Positions 300 through 63,852 of a stretch of 64,000 bases of DNA are shown here, in pieces. How positions within the stretch are numbered: position 1 is the first letter of the stretch; the number at the start of each line of letters is the position of its first letter. A program made the position numbers and the translations under genes. The stretch is from the sequence record LC727699.1. One strand, written 5' to 3'. The notes beneath the pieces were generated by a model that did not search any database, was not told the DNA's origin, and worked only from the letters and a program-made list of their open reading frames with translations.

Positions 300-2411
300 T
301 TAAAACCGCATATATGCGGGCTGATATGGTTTATACATACGTGTATCAAAGTCATTAAAATCAATTGCGATATCATACTTCTCAAATGATTCTTTTAGCA
401 TCTGATAAATGATTTTATTTTCATCAAAATTATTATTTTTATCAACATAACTTTCTAATGACTCTGTGATCTCAAATGGAGATTTAATACCCATAATAGC
501 TTCAACCATTGCCTGACTCCATTTTAGAATGTCATCTGACCTTGTTGAGATATTCGGTTCATCTTCTGTATCGAGAGTACATTGATATACGACTGTTTGT
601 GAATCCTGACCTTTACGGTAAATTCGAGCAATAGCTTGTTCTAGAATGTAATGCCTAAACGGTGAATTAATTGTCACCATAGTATCAGCCATCGTCATAC
701 GGACCGCTGTTGAAAGGGAAGCATATGTAGCTACCAATGGATTTAATTTAGGGTCTTTCTCAAATCTACTGATTATTTGAGGTAAATTGTCATTGGTTTT
801 ACCATACACCACCGCCGGATGCATACCTAATTTATTGGTGTACTTATCAACAGTATCAACAACCTCAACAAACGATGTAAATGCAATCGTTTTCTTCATA
901 GTTGATTCAGTGATACCAACCCAGTCAATATACGGTACCATGTCCACATGGCACTGAATGCGTTTAGCACCTAAAACCCTTCCCAAACATTCACCTTGTA
1001 TCTTTAGCATAACGTATTTTATAACTGATTTAATATCTCTAAAAGCAGCTATTTCATTACGAGGTAAAGTTGGCTCTATAAACATTTTTTCATATTGGTT
1101 AGATTCTTTAATTTCTTCACCAATGTATCGCGGGTCTTGATTCTTCTGAATTATTTTAATCAAATTCTTATAGCGAGCGAAACCATCTTTCTGCGCCTGG
1201 GTCTTAAGAGAGTTCTCGTGTATCGCCATTAGTTTAGCCCAATACTTCTCATCTTCTGGTCGGCGCGCAGCATAGAACTTTACACGTTCTCTAATAAAAG
1301 CTTCACAATCACGTTTAATGGCATTAAGAGTATACTGTGATCCATTTGGTATCTTGATACGATACGCTTTTATCCTCGGTGGTAAAACCTCAGTATCTTT
1401 CTTTTCAATGACGTACGCAATTAACCCAAAGCGATGTTGGACAATATCTAATCCTTTCTGTGTCTCTTTTCCAAATGCTTTCTTAAAACGTTCTTCAACC
1501 TCATTGGTGAAGAGATCGTCTAATACTCTTAATGCACTTACTAATTCAGAACCAAGTGCTTTAACAGGGGTACCTGACGCTAATAATCTGTTATTAGAGT
1601 TAGACATAAAACATATTTGCTGGAACTTAAGAGATTGTGCAGAATTAGGATCGTTCATATTGTGTGATTCATCCAGAATCACCGTAATGTTCTTACCTTT
1701 GAATATACCGCTTCTTAATAGATCAATTATTTTATCTTGCGCCTGGTAATGGGATATAAGTATTCTTTGACCGTTGTAGGCTTTATCATCAATGGTCGAC
1801 CATACTTTTTGTCTTTCCTTATACATCTCAATAATAGATGGCTTCCATATTAGATCAATAGACTTCTTTTCACAAACAACTATAATGATATCCGACTCAA
1901 CCATTTCAGCAATAGCCATCGTCATGAATGTCTTACCAGTACCAGGTTTACCTGCAACAATATCACCACGTAAACCATACTGGTCAATTCGATAATTATA
2001 ATTTTCAAAATAAGCTTTTTGAGACCCATCTGGTGTAAATGTCAATTTGTCTAACATCTTGAAATTGAGTCTACCTGGTACAGAGTTGGTATCTACAGGA
2101 CGAGTATTTTTTAACCAGGTATATTGAAGCATTGCTTCACGGATGGCATTAACAGTTTTAATAGAGATGTATCTACTTCTATAATTCTTTACTGCTTCTA
2201 GCATGTAATATATTTCAGGAGCAAAGAATTTATAAAATGAAATACTACGACGACTAACCGTGTTAAATAACTGCGTAGCTAATTTAGTGGTTCGCCAATA
2301 CTTGTTAATATCTCTAATGAATGCAGCACCATCAAAACCACTGATGATAATTTCTTGATCAGTTTCAGTAATTGATAGCGAGCCCATTATCTTCCTAAAT
2401 GAGTCTATCAT
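300..2411 (-). CDS. SF2 (SNF2-like) helicase
   Basis: Walker A GKPGTGKT, Walker B ILDESH, motif III ASGTP, motif VI EQAIARIYRKGQ. Confidence 0.9.
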   Translation of the reverse strand: MIDSFRKIMGSLSITETDQEIIISGFDGAAFIRDINKYWRTTKLATQLFNTVSRRSISFYKFFAPEIYYMLEAVKNYRSRYISIKTVNAIREAMLQYTWLKNTRPVDTNSVPGRLNFKMLDKLTFTPDGSQKAYFENYNYRIDQYGLRGDIVAGKPGTGKTFMTMAIAEMVESDIIIVVCEKKSIDLIWKPSIIEMYKERQKVWSTIDDKAYNGQRILISHYQAQDKIIDLLRSGIFKGKNITVILDESHNMNDPNSAQSLKFQQICFMSNSNNRLLASGTPVKALGSELVSALRVLDDLFTNEVEERFKKAFGKETQKGLDIVQHRFGLIAYVIEKKDTEVLPPRIKAYRIKIPNGSQYTLNAIKRDCEAFIRERVKFYAARRPEDEKYWAKLMAIHENSLKTQAQKDGFARYKNLIKIIQKNQDPRYIGEEIKESNQYEKMFIEPTLPRNEIAAFRDIKSVIKYVMLKIQGECLGRVLGAKRIQCHVDMVPYIDWVGITESTMKKTIAFTSFVEVVDTVDKYTNKLGMHPAVVYGKTNDNLPQIISRFEKDPKLNPLVATYASLSTAVRMTMADTMVTINSPFRHYILEQAIARIYRKGQDSQTVVYQCTLDTEDEPNISTRSDDILKWSQAMVEAIMGIKSPFEITESLESYVDKNNNFDENKIIYQMLKESFEKYDIAIDFNDFDTRMYKPYQPAYMRF

Positions 2412-2494
2412 TGCATTTTTCCTTAAGGGGTATGTAAATATAACTCTAAGTCATAAGATTAGCTAACGAATAAAAATACGCACAGTGCAATGAT

Positions 2495-2680
2495 ATAGAG
2501 CAAGGCAGTTTGCGTAAAACGCACTGCACTTTAAGGGGGTGATCCAGTCGTAAATAAACCGGGGTACTAAAGTATCGTCAGGAACGACACGAACCCCAAC
2601 TACGGTGCCTTGCTACTCACCGACCTCTAGATAGGGGTCGGACCTATTACATTAAAGGAGCCCACCAGGGGCTCCTTTAT
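2495..2680 (+). ncRNA. Candidate structured ncRNA, about 185 nt
   Basis: GC-rich ORF-less island with a 9-bp outer stem, nested arms, a hairpin and a terminator; G-U pairs favour the + strand. Confidence 0.5.
2654..2678. terminator. Intrinsic terminator, A- and T-tailed
   Basis: AAAGGAGCCC-ACCAG-GGGCTCCTTT. Confidence 0.8.
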
Positions 2681-2689
2681 GCCATTCAT

Positions 2690-2716
2690 TATAAATTAAT
2701 TTAAATCTATATTACA
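2690..2716 (+). promoter_or_regulatory. phiKZ-type early promoter (class B)
   Basis: TTTAAATC-TATATTAC, core at 2708-2715, upstream of the first + strand gene. Confidence 0.75.
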
Positions 2717-2761
2717 GGATTACCATAAAGATATTTATCCTTTTATAATGAGGAAAAGATT

Positions 2762-3157
2762 ATGTCCGATATTAATAGCACCAATGTAACAGATGAATTA
2801 GTACCTTATTTTCCATCGGCGGATGCCATTACTAGTTCTACTATTAGGGATGAAGTAATTCCTAATATTTTGTTATTCTACAAGAATGCTTTTAGTGACT
2901 TCCAACACGTTAGTAATATCACAGGTACTAACCAGATTGCATCAGGTTATTTACCAGGTGTAGGTTATTATTTCGAGTATAGTGTTACCGGTAATGCTAA
3001 TCTTATTCCACCTGAAGCAATTAAAGTATTACGTAATGTAATCACTAAAAATGGATATAAAGATGACATTACCATCACACCAAAAGGTTTTGGCCTAATC
3101 AATTGGTTCATTGTGAGAGTATACGTAGATGAGCAAATTAAGAAGACTACTCAATAA
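2762..3157 (+). CDS. Hypothetical protein
   Basis: 131-aa ORF with GAGG RBS, first gene after an early promoter. Confidence 0.8.
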   Translation: MSDINSTNVTDELVPYFPSADAITSSTIRDEVIPNILLFYKNAFSDFQHVSNITGTNQIASGYLPGVGYYFEYSVTGNANLIPPEAIKVLRNVITKNGYKDDITITPKGFGLINWFIVRVYVDEQIKKTTQ

Positions 3158-3305
3158 AGAATTAGAAAAAGAGTTAGTTAAAAAACTAGATTTTCTAGAA
3201 CGTGATTTTAGAGCTATAAAAGAAGTTATCAAAACTGGAAAATATCCTGATCCTGTTAATCCGAATCGCAGACAAAGTGATTATGATTTATCTTTTAATA
3301 ATTAA
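3129..3305 (+). CDS. Small hypothetical protein (58 aa, below track cutoff)
   Basis: MSKLRRLLNKELEKELVKKLDFLERDFRAIKEVIKTGKYPDPVNPNRRQSDYDLSFNN fills the gap between neighbours. Confidence 0.6.
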   Translation: MSKLRRLLNKELEKELVKKLDFLERDFRAIKEVIKTGKYPDPVNPNRRQSDYDLSFNN

Positions 3306-3321
3306 CCTATAAGAGGATGCT

Positions 3322-3723
3322 ATGGAAATCACATTTCCATCTGTAAAAGAAGTAATGACAACTGATCCAGCATTTATTGATTTGGTTCTGAAAAGTAAAT
3401 TACTTACTATCCGTAAAGCAATGATTGATGTTATTCGAAATATTGAGAATACATCACTAGCATCTAGTAGGCTTGTTAAACAGAAAAGCTATCCATATCA
3501 AACTACTTTCGAACTTGTATTTAACCCAAAGGTTTTTAAATGGTTTGATAAAACAGATGCTATCAATATTAAAAATATTCTTCATGCTGAAGTAGTTAAC
3601 CAGGATTGGGAGAGTATTGATATTTCTTATAATGGTAGGGATATACATGGTTTTGAAAAAGTGACTATTGTATTAACTCCTATGAAAGATGAAGCTATTA
3701 AATATGATCTTTCAAAAGCATGA
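3322..3723 (+). CDS. Hypothetical protein
   Basis: 133-aa ORF, GAGGA RBS, followed by a terminator. Confidence 0.8.
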   Translation: MEITFPSVKEVMTTDPAFIDLVLKSKLLTIRKAMIDVIRNIENTSLASSRLVKQKSYPYQTTFELVFNPKVFKWFDKTDAINIKNILHAEVVNQDWESIDISYNGRDIHGFEKVTIVLTPMKDEAIKYDLSKA

Positions 3724-3739
3724 ATTAAGATAACATATA

Positions 3740-3768
3740 CCCTCCCCTTTATTGGGGAGGGATTATTT
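3740..3768 (+). terminator. Intrinsic terminator
   Basis: CCCTCCCC-TTTATT-GGGGAGGG with AT/T tail. Confidence 0.75.
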
Positions 3769-3965
3769 ACTTATATGTTTAATAGAATAAGGACTCTACC
3801 TTGGAATAATGCTAATGCTCTTCACCAGAGAAAAGAGATATATAGATAGACGTATTACACATTATCAGGTTGAGTAGTAAATTAAAACAACCAATAATAC
3901 GTTATTCAATATTGAAATAGTTGTTATAAAACATTTATATTAATCTAATACAGGAAATAAAGAAA

Positions 3966-4676
3966 ATGGGTGATTATGTATATTTAGAAACTCAAGCTAA
4001 AGTAAATAATGAATGGATTGGTATCGAAGATATTGAACTAACACAGAATTATGATCTTTATGCATATCTACTTGATATTCGCAATTATTGGGATGTAAAA
4101 CCATTTGCTTACCATAATGGTGTTCCTGATGATCTGAAAAAGAAACCAGAATGGTGGAGTAGTTATGATGATGATCCACGCTGTGATGCATGGATTAGTG
4201 GTGAAGCTATTCTAAAAGGTATGAGTGAGCTTAAACCAGTTACTAAAACAGTATATATGAGTCTATATACTTATATGTCCTGGGATCGTATGTCAGAACC
4301 AGATTGCTATTCACGGTATAGCCCACGTCTTGTAACAGATGAACCAAAAATTAATAAAATCTCTCAAAAACAATTACAGTATTATAAGAATTTAACTGAA
4401 AGTTTTTATTCTCTAAACCTTAAAGCTAATTATGATTGGAAGGTTATCGACGGTCGGTTACAACGAGTCGGGCCTAAATGTGGTAAGAATCACCTACGTA
4501 ATCTACGTCGAGTATCGCGTTATCTATCTTTCTGCAATGTTCCTAATGAACCTATCAAAGTAACTTATACACTCACGGCTGATCAACAGCGAAAAGAATT
4601 TAAACCTTTTATTTATCAAGTCCGAAATGCCGTTCTTAAGTACGGTGATATCCGTCTTCTAATGAGGGTTAGATAA
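3966..4676 (+). CDS. Hypothetical phage protein
   Basis: 236-aa ORF with AGGA RBS; N-terminus MGDYVYLE...NYDLYAYL. Confidence 0.8.
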   Translation: MGDYVYLETQAKVNNEWIGIEDIELTQNYDLYAYLLDIRNYWDVKPFAYHNGVPDDLKKKPEWWSSYDDDPRCDAWISGEAILKGMSELKPVTKTVYMSLYTYMSWDRMSEPDCYSRYSPRLVTDEPKINKISQKQLQYYKNLTESFYSLNLKANYDWKVIDGRLQRVGPKCGKNHLRNLRRVSRYLSFCNVPNEPIKVTYTLTADQQRKEFKPFIYQVRNAVLKYGDIRLLMRVR

Positions 4677-5329
4677 TGGCAATGACAGCTATTGTCGGTA
4701 GTCGCTATGCCCCTACATGGGCCCTAGAATTGATGATACGCGCAGGAAGAACATTTGTTGATCTAGGTATAGGTATTTCATCAGGCGATGCATATGGATC
4801 AGATAGAGCTGGTTGGTATGGTGCAATTCAGTCTGATAAATGGGATACAGTAGAAAGTCGTATTTACATTATTCGAAATGGATTTCTTGGAAGACGAATT
4901 GAGAATCTAGCGTGGTTTCATGATGCCTCCGTATATACTGATACCATTCCCACAGCTATGGCAATGGCCTGTGCAGCTCGGGGAAGTTTCAATGGTTTAG
5001 GTAGAACAGGTATTGAACTACATACTCGTAATGTATTTCAAATTCATGGCCATACTTTACGTGAACCTGTTTCAACTATTATTGCATACGGTGAACAAAA
5101 GACACCAACCTCTGTAATTAGTGGTGGTACTAATACAGCGTGGCAGTTGGCATTAGATGCAAATGTGCCAACTATGTATAACCTATACTGGTCCGATGAT
5201 GTAAAGAGACTAGAAGAATGGTTAAATAAAAATGAATCTGATGAGCCATATATGCCAATTGATTGGTCTGAAATCTTAGATCCTAGAGATAGCCGTCTAC
5301 CTGAATTGATGGATGAATATAATAATTAA
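4676..5329 (+). CDS. SLOG/DprA-like Rossmann-fold protein
   Basis: AIVGSR, SSGDAYGSD and SGGTNTA motifs resemble the SLOG/DprA(Smf) superfamily. Confidence 0.65.
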   Translation: MAMTAIVGSRYAPTWALELMIRAGRTFVDLGIGISSGDAYGSDRAGWYGAIQSDKWDTVESRIYIIRNGFLGRRIENLAWFHDASVYTDTIPTAMAMACAARGSFNGLGRTGIELHTRNVFQIHGHTLREPVSTIIAYGEQKTPTSVISGGTNTAWQLALDANVPTMYNLYWSDDVKRLEEWLNKNESDEPYMPIDWSEILDPRDSRLPELMDEYNN

Positions 5330-5362
5330 TTTTCTCAAATGAATTAGTTATAATAGCCAAAA

Positions 5363-5390
5363 TAAACCCTCCTCTTAGTAGGAGGGTTTA
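5363..5390 (+). terminator. Intrinsic terminator
   Basis: TAAACCCTCCT-CTTAGT-AGGAGGGTTTA. Confidence 0.75.
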
Positions 5391-5432
5391 TATCGTCTCA
5401 AATTAGATTATCAATTAGAAAAGGAACATCAA

Positions 5433-6533
5433 ATGAATTATCGTAATAGCAAACTTACGTTAGTCCAGCAGAAGTGGATTGATCGTTTTATCTCCATTGC
5501 TATGGAGGTTGATAATGGCCGTGCAATTTCCAATGCATATCGCTATACTCTTAATGAACAGGGAATTAGTTCAGATAGTGAAGATCTACGTATTCACTAT
5601 CCTTTTGGAGTTGATAGAAAAGAATTCATCAAAGAACAAATTTACAAACTATGTGATGAAGTTATAAGCCCTTTAAATCTGAAAGCATTCAGAATTAGTG
5701 GTGGTTTTGCATTACTAGATGATGAAGGAATCATTGGTTTCCTAATGAATGGAATAGAAGGTACCACTAGTCAGAACTTTAGATTATACTCCAATGAAGA
5801 ACTGATCAAAGTATTTAAATTACGTTTTGAAGAAGTATTTGATCAGACTCGTCCACCTAGTATTAAAAGAATTCGGGTTAACTATCAAAATAATGAACTA
5901 TATAGCTTTAGTGAAGTTATTTCTGTTCGTAACTACAATCCAAATATGATGGAAATGTATCCATTCCTAGATCGATCTCCAGCTGAAATCTGGACTGAAT
6001 TCGCTGCATCTGAATCTAATGTTCTACTATTGATTGGTCCTCCTGGTACTGGTAAGTCTAATTATATCAATGAGATTATTCGGGCTCGTGGTTATAATGA
6101 TCGTAATGTGTATCTAGCTGATCAAGATGATGTACTTGGCCACGCCGGTTTGACTAATTTTATTCGTGGTGTTGAGGATAATTCACTCATTATTACAGAA
6201 GACTCTGATAAAATGGTGGCTAAACGTGTAGATGGTAATAGTAATATGTCAGGGCTATTAAATGCTACAGCTGGTCTAGTATCTACTAAGACCAAGATTA
6301 TCATTTCTACTAATCTTCCGACTCTTCGTGATGTTGATGAAGCTTTAGTTCGACCTGGCCGTGCTTTCGATATTCTTACCTTCAAAACACTTACTGCTGA
6401 ACAAGCGAATGCAGCTCGTTTAGCTAATGGTCTAGATCCAGTTGAGTTTGTCGGTAATAATCTTACTTTAGCTGAAGCATTGAATACTAGTTCTTGCAGT
6501 AGCCCACGCAAAGCAAGTCGTGTAGGTTTCTAA
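5433..6533 (+). CDS. AAA+ ATPase
   Basis: Walker A GPPGTGKS, Walker B IITED, second region of homology STN...DEALVRPGR. Confidence 0.9.
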   Translation: MNYRNSKLTLVQQKWIDRFISIAMEVDNGRAISNAYRYTLNEQGISSDSEDLRIHYPFGVDRKEFIKEQIYKLCDEVISPLNLKAFRISGGFALLDDEGIIGFLMNGIEGTTSQNFRLYSNEELIKVFKLRFEEVFDQTRPPSIKRIRVNYQNNELYSFSEVISVRNYNPNMMEMYPFLDRSPAEIWTEFAASESNVLLLIGPPGTGKSNYINEIIRARGYNDRNVYLADQDDVLGHAGLTNFIRGVEDNSLIITEDSDKMVAKRVDGNSNMSGLLNATAGLVSTKTKIIISTNLPTLRDVDEALVRPGRAFDILTFKTLTAEQANAARLANGLDPVEFVGNNLTLAEALNTSSCSSPRKASRVGF

Positions 6534-6640
6534 GGAAAAGTAAGCTGCTTTTAAACTAGCGAAGAAACATGAATTCCAACGTGTTATTTATAATCCTGAT
6601 GACCTTAAAGTAAAGCATTATTTCACATACGGAGATCAGC

Positions 6641-7243
6641 ATGCAGCGCAATAATGACCCGCAGCAAGTAATCATGTCGATTGAGATGTACAATAGCCTA
6701 CTGGCTATGGCTAATGATTCACCTCATTACACGACAAAACTTATCCAACGTCACGTGCGAAAGATGAATCCTTTTTTACAACCTGCACATCTAAAGAATG
6801 TCAGAACTAAGGAAGCTATTCGGTCCCAACGTATTCGTGAAGCTCGGGCTTTCTTCGAAGCCAATCATAGAAAAATTCTGTACGCAAAGGTTGATATGGG
6901 TAACTGTAAAAAAGGAGATGATCCGGTTTACTTCCCATGCATATCTGAACGTATTGCCAAGAATAGACAACTAATCCAAGTTCGTCATGCCAATGAAGTT
7001 GGTTATGGACGGTGCATCCGGTTGGTAGAGGCTAAATATCTCACAACCATTATTCCTGATGGATATATCCAAGGAACTGGGCCGTATAAAAAATATCTTG
7101 TTAAAGAGAATGGTCCTTACGATATCCGTGAACAAGAAGAAAAACGTAAACAAGCTTTTTCGAGTGAGATAGCTAAGAAGTTTGAGTTCAAACATGATTC
7201 TTACGATATGGATAATCTCAAAAAGAATTATTATACACAATGA
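6641..7243 (+). CDS. Hypothetical protein, paralogue of 31606..31989
   Basis: 200-aa ORF with GGAG RBS; N-terminal similarity to 31606. Confidence 0.75.
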   Translation: MQRNNDPQQVIMSIEMYNSLLAMANDSPHYTTKLIQRHVRKMNPFLQPAHLKNVRTKEAIRSQRIREARAFFEANHRKILYAKVDMGNCKKGDDPVYFPCISERIAKNRQLIQVRHANEVGYGRCIRLVEAKYLTTIIPDGYIQGTGPYKKYLVKENGPYDIREQEEKRKQAFSSEIAKKFEFKHDSYDMDNLKKNYYTQ

Positions 7244-7334
7244 GATTAGTATAAATGGACATTAGTTTATCTCCAGTATGAGTATTCCAACTTCTTAAAT
7301 ATTACTAAAGAGCAGACTATGAATATATCAGTGT

Positions 7335-7703
7335 TTGCTCTTTGGAGGTAATTACTCTGGAGCATCTAATATGTGTGCAATTCCTGTAATACCTGTATCA
7401 AATGACATCACTGTTATTAAGCCAGGTGATACAGTTTGGTCAACAGGTGTTCTCGGTATGAAAGCATCCTGTGAGCATCCACCAGCGCTATTCTGTATAC
7501 GGGGTGATGAACTTGAAGTTCTAGAAATTAGCCCTCCCACGGAATATGAGAAAAAAGCAATGTATAAGTGCCGCTTAAAAAGAGGCACTGGTCATTTCTG
7601 GATCTATCGTAGTGGGTTTACTAAAATAAAGCCATTTAATCACAATATGACTGGTTATGAGTTTTGGGATGGTGAGAAAATTAGAGAATATGGTGGGCAT
7701 TAG
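7335..7703 (+). CDS. Hypothetical protein, possible SH3/KOW-like beta domain (start uncertain)
   Basis: IKPGDTV...RGDELEVLEI pattern shared with 40831, 41142 and 43217. Confidence 0.6.
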   Translation: MLFGGNYSGASNMCAIPVIPVSNDITVIKPGDTVWSTGVLGMKASCEHPPALFCIRGDELEVLEISPPTEYEKKAMYKCRLKRGTGHFWIYRSGFTKIKPFNHNMTGYEFWDGEKIREYGGH

Positions 7704-63689: not shown

Positions 63690-63833
63690 TATAAAGCCTC
63701 CCCGAAGGGAGGCGATATATCGTCATTAATGCCCAGCAAAGAGTTTTACTCTCTGGGAGCCAGTTGGAAGGGGGACTGGCTCCGATTTATTATGACTAAT
63801 GTAGAAACGAGGGGGAGGGATCATTTCTACATA
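63690..63833 (-). ncRNA. Candidate sRNA with two C-rich (anti-SD-like) loops, about 145 nt
   Basis: TATG start, two perfect 9-bp stems with C-rich loops, a third stem and a UUCG terminator with T tail. Confidence 0.6.
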
Positions 63834-63852
63834 TCATTACATACTCAGTAAG

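Follow-up and report, generated by a model that had tools for sequence, protein, structure and literature searches.

Introduction

The 6S RNA of bacteria (RF00013) is an abundant, structured RNA of 150-190 nt that holds RNA polymerase by mimicking an open promoter, and it folds into a rod with a central bubble. On the ribosome, the Shine-Dalgarno (SD) sites of mRNAs, extended ones included, pair with the 3' tail of the 16S rRNA over 4-9 positions. In the late 1970s, short oligonucleotides that pair with the 16S 3' end were found to block the formation of initiation complexes in vitro, and synthetic oligonucleotides or PNAs placed on this end block mRNA binding and initiation in vitro. SD-like GGA motifs are also displayed by the Rsm/Csr sponge RNAs (RsmY, RsmZ, CsrB), which carry them as decoys in many loops and bind protein, GGA being the motif bound by RsmA/RsmN. 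Small ribosome-associated ncRNAs that damp translation have been described in Haloferax (Val-tRF; PMC11009984) and in yeast (an 18-mer; PMC3988847). In phage phiKZ, a Grad-seq screen sought RNAs that do not co-migrate with ribosomes (Gerovac, 2021, PMC8545117), and a 30S binder would have been missed because of that target.

The window analysed here, a stretch of 64,000 nucleotides from record LC727699.1, belongs to the giant Pseudomonas phage phiKZ and differs from NC_004629 by indels. Between gp203 and gp204 it holds the gene of an ncRNA that is absent from the accessible portions of the phiKZ ncRNA lists of PMC8545117 and PMC10914365, where it is represented by its 3' end alone (entry T095). 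With the published candidates it shares the phage and the terminator type, and with the 141-nt ncRNA upstream of PHIKZ302 also the kind of promoter. The ncRNA resembles 6S RNA in being abundant, structured and of similar size, and it too would imitate the substrate of a core gene-expression machine and hold that machine; it is, however, a three-way junction with a strand like a ribosome-binding site (RBS), and it would hold the 30S subunit. With mRNA SD sites it shares the partner and the pairing register on the 16S tail, whereas it offers 14-21 contiguous pairs (-20 kcal/mol against a median of -5.6 kcal/mol for phiKZ genes), lacks a start codon or ORF and embeds the block in a conserved, structured RNA. 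The synthetic oligonucleotides and PNAs have the same target sequence but are artificial and unstructured, and the ncRNA would be their natural, virus-encoded and structured counterpart. Val-tRF and the yeast 18-mer, unlike the phiKZ ncRNA, are pieces of the cell's own tRNA or mRNA, act by routes other than the anti-SD tail and are not phage-encoded, and the Rsm/Csr sponges differ from its single long block, whose conservation tracks the 16S rRNA beyond GGA.

Results

The transcript, its ends and its putative promoter

The features of the locus are as follows.

2452-2463, minus strand: late promoter and start site of gp203 (TSS 2452; P107 of Putzeys et al., TSS 212808), outside the ncRNA
2477-2496, plus strand: putative promoter of the ncRNA, with TAC at 2477-2479, a spacer and TGCAATGATAT at 2486-2496; start at A2497
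2497-2646, plus strand (NC_004629 212,853-213,002): mature ncRNA of about 150 nt, from ONT cDNA ends
2653-2682, plus strand: phiKZ-type terminator, with an 11-bp stem (2653-2663/2669-2679), loop ACCAG and then TTTATG
2706-2715, plus strand: early-promoter-like TCTATATTAC, serving gp204 and outside the ncRNA, a string that we take to be the phiKZ early-promoter consensus

Evidence for the transcript came from public long-read cDNA (ONT run X12) and from an Illumina run (X9), both as contigs without fraction information. In X12 the 5' adapter junction lies at 2497 in three contigs, and one more carries the adapter followed by AGAGC, while the junction with the added poly(A) tail places the 3' end at 2646; a further adapter junction at 2452 falls on the gp203 TSS. 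Word depth in X12 was 1200-7700 over 2489-2656, against 138 at the 5' end of gp203 and 20 in gp204, which places the ncRNA 10-50x above gp203 and about 60-380x above gp204. The 3' end coincides with terminator site T095 at 213001 (Putzeys et al., PMC10914365). The main species thus ends upstream of the canonical terminator, and the depth is 0 at 2657-2677, over the terminator hairpin. The earlier note, made from the letters alone, had proposed an RNA of about 180-186 nt that included this hairpin; its arms exist where they were placed, but the hairpin lies outside the main species, which is some 150 nt long. A longer form may also exist, since a contig of X9 spans 2474-2683, and the 5' end could be a product of processing instead of a primary end, because the authors of the ONT-cappable-seq study list no TSS there (Putzeys et al., 2024, PMC10914365). 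No plus-strand ORF of at least 20 aa was found within 2412-2761, in agreement with the earlier note.

The 20 nt upstream of the start are very similar to those of a promoter whose TSS has been published. The arrangement TAC-N7-TGTAATGATAT(G) is common to the ncRNA and to the published 141-nt phiKZ ncRNA at 63.8 kb, where it also precedes the start; the motif TGCAATGATAT recurs there as TGTAATGATATG at 63829-63840 on the minus strand (ten-base core TAATGATATG at 63830-63839), a likeness that the earlier note had already remarked upon. The block is kept in all homologues (alignment A1). Compared with the TATG type of the phiKZ non-virion RNA polymerase, it has TATA with +1 at A2497 instead of TATG with +1 at G, the late TATG promoters having +1 at their last base (Putzeys supplement, PMC10914365). 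This likeness suggests that 2477-2496 acts as a phage-type promoter of the ncRNA. The phiKZ early promoters are described as bearing an AT-rich consensus element, and the motif seen at 2706-2715 also lies 3' of the ncRNA element in Phabio, L261, L265 and Psa21. The hairpin at 2653-2679 has the form of phiKZ terminators, whose motif is a GC-rich stem-loop with TTAT after it (Putzeys et al., 2024, PMC10914365); a generic terminator scan made no call there because the T-run is short.

Homologues and their neighbourhood

Homologues were identified in phiKZ-like phages of Pseudomonas from eight or more genera or lineages (phiKZ relatives, PA1C/phiHQ/PS119XW/BRkr, PhiPA3, Phabio, 201phi2-1, Viktualia, Psa21 and Noxifer) and in four uncultured contigs, three from IMG/VR and one from a metagenome. 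In the one metagenome scanned, with a loosened pattern that also matched genuine 16S genes, the sole real homologue was L301. A loose pattern scan returned about 80 chance loci, none of which fitted the RNA model, and a search for related loci with gp203 recovered only phiKZ itself. Searches by the models R1 and R2, and by GRGGTGATCC as a motif, gave no members in OBP, EL, Ralstonia RP12, Xanthomonas RTH11, Erwinia pEa_SNUABM_54, Serratia 2050HW or Aeromonas D3, the weak matches in these phages falling within coding sequence; absence by R1 is no proof, because this model also missed the genuine member Noxifer. The ncRNA motif occurs as well in a leader RNA of an unrelated Pseudomonas phage (PAK_P3) and in coliphage Goslar, there in a non-coding spacer for which no relatives for comparison were found. 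For 201phi2-1, a list of 11 sRNAs has been published, three of them intergenic, and the homologue in that phage may be among them.

The surroundings of the element bear on whether it could be a cis-acting leader of gp204 (an attenuator, a ribosome standby site or a mini-ORF) or a stable degradation remnant of a longer transcript. The element does lie upstream of gp204 on a common strand, the form at 2474-2683 in X9 could be such a transcript, its TSS is missing from the list of the ONT study (PMC10914365), and many phiKZ 'ncRNA candidates' derive from 5'UTRs (Putzeys et al., 2024, PMC10914365). We nevertheless consider this explanation highly improbable: the early-type promoter at 2706-2715 intervenes before gp204, whose depth is 60-380x below that of the ncRNA; the adapter-tagged 5' ends fall exactly at +1 of the conserved promoter-like motif; and the SD-like block has no start codon after it. 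The next gene and its strand also vary, the gene downstream of the element being on the opposite strand in PA1C and phiHQ, and the downstream genes of PhiPA3, Phabio and 201phi2-1 being different ones, so that the arrangement expected of a leader, riboswitch or attenuator, a constant downstream gene on a shared transcript with an expression platform overlapping the structure, was not found.

A three-way junction maintained by compensatory changes

Comparison of the homologues supports a fold in which P1, P2 and P3/P3b meet in a three-way junction, followed by a 3' hairpin. Its parts, all on the plus strand, are listed below.

2499-2504, plus strand: 5' strand of P1, AGCAAG, paired with 2609-2614
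2505-2527, plus strand: P2 hairpin, with outer helix GCAG 2505-2508/CUGC 2524-2527, bulge UU, inner helix UGCG 2511-2514/CGCA 2520-2523 and loop UAAAA
2532-2552, plus strand: junction strand J2/3, unpaired in the conserved fold, the 21-nt complement of the 16S 3' end
2561-2597, plus strand: P3 domain, GGGGU 2561-2565/ACCCC 2593-2597, enclosing P3b
2575-2587, plus strand: P3b hairpin, UCGU 2575-2578/ACGA 2584-2587, loop CAGGA
2598-2608, plus strand: junction strand J3/1, AACUACGGUGC, conserved and unpaired (alignments A1 and A2)
2609-2614, plus strand: 3' strand of P1, CUUGCU, paired with 2499-2504
2620-2641, plus strand: 3' hairpin HP2, 9 bp including one U-G pair, loop AGAU; 4-5 nt further on is the mature 3' end

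P1 occurs in nine sequence versions in 12 homologues, pairs in every one and in several reaches the extreme 5' end of the RNA. The outer helix of P2 is swapped for GAUA/UAUC in L261, GGUA/UAUC in L265 and L301, GGU/ACC in Psa21 and GCUAC/GUAGC in Noxifer, and the inner helix has six versions. P3 and P3b have eight versions each and pair in all, every one of their nine pairs being changed on both sides in alignment A3; the P3b loop is GNRA in most homologues. Hairpins at the position of HP2 are present in PA1C, PhiPA3, Phabio, 201phi2-1, Viktualia and L191 also, and compensatory changes separate those of 201phi2-1 and Viktualia. Over the whole of alignment A3, 81% of the cells pair against 70% in shuffles, a value reached by none of 500 shuffles; pairs changed on both sides number 12 of 23, and slid controls reach at most 0.16 against 0.305. 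In the hand-curated helices, 5-9 versions each were counted, with pairing throughout. RNAalifold run on the MAFFT alignment paired AAGG of the SD-like block with CCUU; this pairing was dropped for P1, which is preferred because its distal pairs covary. Conservation with compensatory changes, like the transcript itself, goes beyond what chance gives.

The stems described in the earlier note are all present at their places, among them TGCGT/ACGCA (2511-2523), CCGACCTCTA/TAGGGGTCGG (2620-2641) and GGTAC/GTATC, as are the strings of its long arm (GGGGT 2536-2540, ACCCC 2593-2597, GTCGT 2547-2551, ACGAC 2584-2588). The closing stem AGCAAGGCA (2499-2507)/TGCCTTGCT (2606-2614) is indeed a perfect 9-bp match, but in the conserved structure it is the 6-bp P1 followed by the outer P2, GCAG/CTGC, a pairing that had been given merely as an alternative. 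The long arm from GGGGT (2536) to ACCCC (2597), enclosing GTCGT/ACGAC, is peculiar to phiKZ, the conserved partner of ACCCC being the second GGGGT at 2561-2565. Instead of a rod with bubbles the homologues have a junction in which 2532-2552 is single-stranded, and neither sequence nor fold bears out a likeness to 6S or SRP RNA: a long rod with a central asymmetric bubble was not found, and covariation backs P1, P2 and P3. Rfam agrees with the note's statement that no family could be recognised, as only tRNAs match its covariance models across the window; at E <=10, the region 2380-2780 gave four chance-level matches, all on the minus strand and none over 2497-2646. The central claim of the note, a stand-alone plus-strand phage ncRNA with its own promoter, had been staked on a discrete transcript and on homologues with compensatory changes; both were looked for and both are present, the transcript being abundant as well.

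Folding of the plus strand gives -71.2 kcal/mol (z -4.75 against shuffles) and that of the minus strand a z of -4.6, so nearly equal that the strand cannot be chosen by folding energy alone. This equality, together with the position of the element as a GC-rich island at a divergence point of an AT-rich genome, could point to an element acting as DNA, that is, a replication, packaging or protein-binding site whose transcript is incidental. We give this almost no credence, since the G-U pairs in HP2 and, in several homologues, in P1 function only in plus-strand RNA (the U-G pair of HP2, as the earlier note had seen, is A-C on the other strand), RNA helices are preserved by compensatory changes, expression is very high with discrete ends, and in PhiPA3 the element has the opposite orientation with respect to the helicase gene and is otherwise intact.

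Complementarity to the 3' end of the 16S rRNA

The main feature of the ncRNA, which the earlier note missed, is a complement of the 16S 3' end. Positions 2532-2552 are its most conserved stretch and an uninterrupted 21-nt complement of 16S nt 1522-1542 (18 Watson-Crick and 3 G-U pairs), a target that comprises the free 3' tail with the whole anti-SD and the 3' strand of helix 45. The 16S 3' end was read from Pseudomonas putida and other Pseudomonas species, with which that of P. aeruginosa is presumably identical. Among the 128,000 positions of the 64 kb, the 21-nt run is the longest complement of the 16S tail, the next having 12 nt. The complement is kept at 14-21 nt in all homologues, and when the block was compared with the entire 16S rRNA, the best duplex fell on the 3' terminus in 12 of 12 homologues, at -27 to -38 kcal/mol (z -3.5 to -9.2) and with limits running, by homologue, from 1514-1528 to 1540-1542; the Noxifer block reaches 1514 only via a 7-nt internal loop. 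The variable positions of the block switch only between A and G opposite U1537 and between C and U opposite G1526 (in Noxifer alone also opposite G1525), so that 16S pairing is kept. Duplexes of the block with the 13-nt free tail have energies of -20 to -22 kcal/mol, reduced to between -13 and -17 once the cost of opening the block is deducted, while the SDs of 99 phiKZ genes have a median of -5.6 and a best value of -12.2 kcal/mol. The predicted probability of being unpaired is 0.30-0.54 for the block and 0.34-0.50 for the whole RNA, so the ensemble predicts no extra openness.

The block is not the ribosome-binding site of a coding gene. Of the seven common bacterial start triplets (AUG, GUG, UUG, CUG, AUU, AUC and AUA), none begins 5-12 nt past GGRGG in any homologue, and the combination of a start 4-12 nt downstream of the SD with an ORF was likewise not found. 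GGRGG is followed by the conserved UGAUCCAG(Y)C; a GUG overlapping the GGRGG core and an AUC 3 nt past it are both too close to serve as starts. By its long, conserved and exceptional complementarity, the RNA is a candidate for a proposed class, antisense RNA to the 16S 3' end, whose members would also associate physically with 30S or 16S in infected cells.

A real RNA whose conserved G-rich strand has a partner other than 16S is an alternative that we regard as rather unlikely. The partner could be a protein (a phage RNA-binding protein, S1, Hfq or RsmA/RsmN), and the SD-like GGA motifs of the Rsm/Csr sponges, together with the CAGGA loop of P3b in phiKZ, fit such a role. Conservation nevertheless runs through GUGAUCCAG, which is meaningless to a GGA-binding protein but tracks 16S 1527-1534 exactly; moreover, each RNA has just one or two GGA motifs, where a sponge would have several, and the loop motif is not conserved, GGA being missing from P3b in 201phi2-1, L191 and L261. 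Alternatively, the partner could be a C/U-rich stretch of another transcript, such as the loop UGAUCCCUCCCCCU of the phiKZ 141-nt ncRNA at 63.8 kb, itself similar to the 16S tail. This loop pairs with the block at -16.9 kcal/mol, and the antisense of the loop ranks second among the anti-SD binders of the window; the pairing was matched or beaten by 85 of 1000 shuffles, however, and was set aside as not significant.

The second junction strand raises a different explanation, in which the ncRNA would be a bipartite antisense RNA that works like a guide on the 3' minor domain of 16S, with J2/3 on 1522-1542 and J3/1 plus the 3' strand of P1 on 1494-1514, leaving the helix-45 loop (GGAA, with two dimethyl-adenosines) exposed for cleavage, modification or a block of late 30S maturation. 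Two arms do flank the P3 stem, a topology known from bipartite guides (H/ACA-like); CUACGG, CCUUG and, in Noxifer, UACCUUG exactly complement 1509-1514, 1501-1505 and 1501-1507; GCC before CUUG is conserved even where it is unable to pair within P1 (L261); and a duplex of 19-21 bp is long enough to be cut by RNase III. On 16S, the second arm has its best site at 1492-1519 in phiKZ, PA1C and PhiPA3, and at 1498-1536, across a 15-nt internal loop, in L191. The best site nonetheless lies outside 1492-1519 in 7 of 12 homologues, being elsewhere in 16S in Phabio, 201phi2-1, Viktualia, L261, L265 and Psa21 and partly overlapping in Noxifer (1510-1530), and in comparison with shuffles the second arm reaches no significance (z +1.0 to -3.3). 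J3/1 resembles the complement of 1504-1514, but this pairing is without statistical support. Its CCUUG is already accounted for by P1, no conserved enzyme gene adjoins the element, and helix 45 is buried in mature subunits. We therefore judge a guide function improbable.

Discussion

To judge from the letters of the two partners, the ncRNA probably grips the small ribosomal subunit as an mRNA does, without coding for anything. In the conserved fold, P1 closes the 5' and 3' ends, with the P2 hairpin, P3 with its GNRA-type hairpin and the 3' hairpin after the junction, while the strand between P2 and P3 is left unpaired and offers a 14-21-nt complement of the tail and a few bases of helix 45. 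We hypothesize that the ncRNA docks on free 30S subunits like the RBS of an mRNA but holds them much more tightly; lacking a start codon downstream, it would occupy the anti-SD tail, so that the bound subunits would be withheld or marked; the logic would be that of a '6S RNA for the ribosome'. The full reading, a stand-alone, highly expressed, non-coding phage RNA made from its own putative phage-type promoter and acting as a start-codon-less RBS mimic on the anti-SD tail of the 30S subunit, stands at about an even chance in our estimate.

Several points weigh on the RBS-mimic reading. Full-length pairing would require helix 45 to be opened in the folded 30S for the last 6-8 of the 21 pairs, and the RNA, made inside the phage nucleus, would need export. 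A selective shut-off of the host that spares SD-less phage genes was rejected, as 63 of 99 phiKZ genes have an SD core (counted on the reference NC_004629), and for the same reason a global anti-SD blocker would harm the phage too unless limited in dose, timing or location; the benefit that the phage would draw from anti-SD blocking is unexplained.

How giant nucleus-forming phages take over translation is the question on which the ncRNA bears, and to our knowledge only proteins of these phages have so far been found on host ribosomes (e.g., phiKZ gp014 on the 50S). Here is an abundant, conserved, non-coding RNA bearing the strongest possible ribosome-binding sequence. As a broader proposal, which we advance tentatively and hold slightly less likely to be right than wrong, nucleus-forming Pseudomonas phages may encode a dedicated structured antisense RNA against the host 16S 3' end, a viral RNA that would work on the ribosome directly through base pairing and which would cap the anti-SD tail, possibly invade helix 45 and thereby re-program, sequester or cleave 30S subunits in infection. 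The PAK_P3 leader and the Goslar spacer give a hint that phage 'anti-tail' RNAs form a wider class, so far unrecognised. Even without a role on 16S, the ncRNA, found in a model phage and with four covarying helices, represents a new family of structured RNAs and merits annotation. If the proposed role is true, it would be, by our literature search and general knowledge, the first known natural trans-acting RNA of bacteria or their viruses aimed at the anti-SD; it would represent a new mode of initiation control, explain how the ncRNA escaped a Grad-seq screen for non-ribosomal sedimentation, and provide a compact natural scaffold for the display of anti-ribosome sequences.

Genomic setting and ends of the RNA

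The DNA analyzed here is that of Pseudomonas phage phiKZ, or of a strain nearly identical to it, with window position 1 corresponding to about position 210,357 of NC_004629. The two sequences are not identical: annotated CDS starts slip progressively out of register along the window, which implies indels in the window, and base 2390 is T in the window and G in the RNA-seq strains. The RNA of interest lies in a spacer that contains no + strand ORF of at least 20 aa.

Features of the locus
Up to 2411, - strand: PHIKZ203 (gp203), SNF2/DEAD-type helicase, end at 2411
Between PHIKZ203 and PHIKZ204: spacer of 350 bp holding the RNA
From 2762, + strand: start of PHIKZ204 (gp204)

Public RNA runs were aligned to positions 2300-2900. 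In X12, a Nanopore cDNA run, word depth was 1200-7700 over 2489-2656, compared with 138 at the gp203 start and 20 over gp204; these contig-based depths are crude, though the contrast is large. The strand-switching adapter was joined at 2497 in three contigs, one further contig read adapter and then AGAGC, and the in-vitro poly(A) tail was joined at 2646. These junctions define an RNA of about 150 nt, 2497-2646 on the + strand. The stand-alone ncRNA proposed in an earlier note is thus borne out as a discrete transcript and an independent conserved unit, shorter than the 180 nt suggested there and ending before the terminator. Its 3' end falls 4-5 nt past the hairpin 2620-2641 and before a canonical phiKZ-type terminator (2653-2679, plus TTTATG) with zero depth in X12, and is the same site as terminator T095, which Putzeys et al. 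(2024; PMC10914365) list at 213001 (+) in their supplement. An Illumina contig from a separate study covers 2474-2683, so that a longer, rarer form may exist. The same RNA data confirmed the late start site of gp203 at 2452, - strand.

Directly upstream of the 5' end, all homologues carry TAC followed, after 6-9 nt, by (T/C)AATGATAT or a closely similar sequence. The same 20-nt pattern precedes the 141-nt phiKZ ncRNA encoded at 63.8 kb on the - strand, a published, northern-validated RNA whose first base is the G of TATG (Putzeys et al., PMC10914365); A2497 is the counterpart of this G. The resemblance noted earlier between TGCAATGATATAG and TGTAATGATATG of the 63.8-kb sRNA is therefore real, and reflects a common putative promoter, not a common RNA. 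The promoter is predicted to be of the middle/late, non-virion polymerase type. Since the ONT-cappable-seq authors list no TSS at 2497 (Putzeys et al., PMC10914365), the 5' end may be processed rather than primary.

A conserved RNA family

Homologues were collected by blastn, pattern scans and two covariance models. They occur in all phiKZ-like isolates, in PA1C, phiHQ, PS119XW and BRkr, in PhiPA3, Phabio, 201phi2-1, Viktualia, Psa21 and Noxifer, and in three uncultured viral contigs (307-317 kb) and one metagenome contig. No homologue was found in OBP, EL or the chimalliviruses of Ralstonia, Xanthomonas, Erwinia, Serratia and Aeromonas, in a search of limited sensitivity whose first model also missed Noxifer. 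No Rfam family matched, even at E <=10, in agreement with the earlier note. The element sits mostly near the SNF2 helicase gene, yet in either orientation and with varying downstream genes, and by this placement it is an independent unit. The gp203 homologues of PhiPA3, PA1C, PS119XW and SL2 (L002, L005, H114-H117) match in two pieces over ~2.9-3.2 kb versus 2.1 kb, and the PA1C helicase is annotated as two CDS, which suggests an insertion (intron, intein or split gene).

All stems listed in the earlier note are present where it had placed them. The long arm of its rod shape, GGGGT(2536)/ACCCC and GTCGT/ACGAC, is also predicted by RNAfold for phiKZ alone; these pairings have no counterpart in the other homologues, whose fold, judged from the compared sequences, is a three-way junction.

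Helices of the RNA (+ strand, phiKZ coordinates)
P1, AGCAAG 2499-2504 / CUUGCU 2609-2614: pairs the 5' end with the 3' part of the RNA; nine versions
P2, hairpin: outer helix GCAG/CUGC; inner helix in six versions
P3, GGGGU 2561-2565 / ACCCC 2593-2597
P3b, hairpin on P3: GNRA loop in most homologues
HP2, 2620-2641: hairpin 3' of P1 in most members

P1 reaches the first nucleotide of the RNA in several phages. In divergent members the outer helix of P2 becomes GAUA/UAUC, GGUA/UAUC, GGU/ACC or GCUAC/GUAGC. In other homologues P3 is represented by GAUAC/GUAUC, GGUAC/GUACC, AGCGA/UCGCU, AGGU/ACCU and GAGCUGC/GCAGCUC; HP2 covaries between 201phi2-1 and Viktualia. These helix versions were counted by hand and lean to the model; counts from A3, the covariance-model-derived alignment, are more neutral, though A3 was fitted to the supplied structure. 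In A3, 81% of paired cells were complementary versus 70% in shuffles (0/500 shuffles), the covariation score was 0.305 versus 0.153 in shuffles and at most 0.16 with slid partners, and both sides had changed in 12 of 23 pairs, among them every one of the nine P3 and P3b pairs. The compensatory changes sought by the earlier note are thus found. Both strands fold well beyond shuffles (z -4.75 for +, -4.6 for -), and folding energy by itself thus leaves the strand undecided; the G-U pairs of HP2 and P1 are compatible with the + strand alone, in line with the note's observation that G-U pairs occur only on the + reading. We hardly doubt that this is a genuine structured ncRNA. HP2 loops have in common a pyrimidine-rich motif resembling CU(A/C)U(C/U)UAAU (L002 ~1645-1660, L004 ~1650-1665, L006 and L007 ~1630-1645), and a similar GACCUCU(A/G)(A/U)U precedes the terminator in Psa21 and two uncultured or metagenome homologues (L261, L265).

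Complementarity to the 16S rRNA 3' end

The earlier note had found a real, interesting RNA gene but missed its complement to the 16S rRNA 3' end. Conservation within the family is highest in the block AGGRGGUGAUCCA, which the fold model leaves unpaired between P2 and P3. This block is the reverse complement of the 16S end, which was taken from Pseudomonas genomes (pattern matches in many species; in P. putida locus L059, 16S at 1408-2944 by Rfam). In phiKZ, 2532-2552 forms 21 uninterrupted pairs (3 G-U) with 16S 1522-1542, covering the whole single-stranded tail 1530-1542 with the anti-SD and continuing into the 3' strand of helix 45. On either strand of the 64-kb window, no run complementary to the final 23 nt of 16S is longer than this 21-mer, the second being 12 nt. 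Against the entire 16S, the best duplex of the block lay at the 3' terminus in 12 of 12 homologues (-27 to -38 kcal/mol; z -3.5 to -9.2 versus shuffles). The block varies only at A/G opposite U1537 and C/U opposite G1526 (plus G1525 in Noxifer), and every variant keeps the pairing. With the 13-nt free tail alone it yields -20 to -22 kcal/mol, or -13 to -17 once the energy predicted for opening it is deducted, and in the thermodynamic ensemble the block is not predicted to be unusually open; SD duplexes of 99 annotated phiKZ genes have a median of -5.6 and a strongest value of -12.2 kcal/mol. In the whole of NC_004629, GGTGATCC shows a mild excess (16 copies versus 6 of the reversed control), and the extended form G(A/G)GGTGATCC occurs only in the copy within this RNA.

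A ribosome-binding site of a gene was rejected, as no homologue has a usual start triplet 5-12 nt past the SD-like core or an ORF after it. A minority rival is a bipartite guide, in which J2/3 (2532-2552) and the strand after P3 would flank P3 and expose the helix-45 loop. That second strand (AACUACGGUGC, then CUUG...) looks like a complement of 16S 1494-1514, its best 16S site in phiKZ, PA1C and PhiPA3; however, its energies are no better than shuffles, 7 of 12 homologues prefer other 16S sites, the uncultured/metagenome homologue L191 additionally gets there only through a large internal loop, and its CCUUG is already required by P1.

Previous reports and related phage sequences

The RNA is absent from the two phiKZ candidates of Gerovac et al. 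(2021; PMC8545117), from the 17 of Table S7 in Putzeys et al. (PMC10914365) and from Wicke et al. (2020/21); among these studies only its 3' end had been tabulated, as T095. The Grad-seq screen of Gerovac et al. was aimed at phage RNAs sedimenting apart from ribosomes, and would therefore hide a 30S-bound RNA. A 201phi2-1 study reports 11 sRNAs, 3 of them intergenic, and the homologue may already be listed there without a 16S interpretation. A full-text literature search returned no phage RNA complementary to the anti-SD.

The 63.8-kb sRNA candidate (63690-63840, - strand) is the published ncRNA upstream of PHIKZ302 (Putzeys TU237/T131). The loop of its 5' hairpin, UGAUCCCUCCCCCU, resembles the 16S tail GGAUCACCUCCUUA, and among anti-SD binders in the window its antisense ranks second (-17.3 kcal/mol); its own pairing with block 2532-2552 (-16.9 kcal/mol) was matched by 85 of 1000 shuffles and is not significant. 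Aeromonas phage AP1 (L283:1265-1527) carries in sense the 3'-terminal 27 nt of a 16S gene (25/27 as in the Pseudomonas query), then tRNA-Ile and tRNA-Ala, and this looks like a piece of host rrn operon captured by a T4-like phage. A 21-nt stretch in the scaffolding gene of LUZ19-like phages (e.g., NC_010326 23906-23926; 20/21 complementary to 16S 1516-1536; E ~4) is probably a chance match amplified by many related genomes.

Two other matches hint at a wider class. In PAK_P3, an unrelated Pseudomonas myovirus, AGAGGAGGUGAUCCAGC, complementary to the 16S tail over 16-17 nt, lies in an 80-nt leader RNA, not strongly structured (z -0.23), upstream of a tRNA cluster (L441:838-920; KC862299 85937-86019); ARAGORN also found an unannotated tRNA-Asn (GTT) at L441:983-1059. 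In coliphage Goslar, GUAGGAGGUGAUCC follows a hairpin in the non-coding gp077-gp076 spacer (L281:1390-1600, - strand; NC_048170 ~87,250-87,460), which ends in a CTTTATGCCG-type chimallivirus terminator and is a possible analogue of the phiKZ RNA.

Possible role in translation

We give even chances to a mechanism based on 16S pairing. The RNA would dock on 30S subunits as a super-RBS without a start codon, and the anti-SD tail would thereby be occupied. Oligonucleotides complementary to the 16S 3'-end sequence block initiation in vitro. A simple selective host shut-off is unlikely, because phiKZ's own genes carry SDs (63 of 99, versus 7 of 99 internal controls), and the dose, timing or location of the RNA may matter. 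The logic would be like that of 6S RNA, which holds on to a machine by mimicking its substrate; for this phage RNA the machine would be the small ribosomal subunit.
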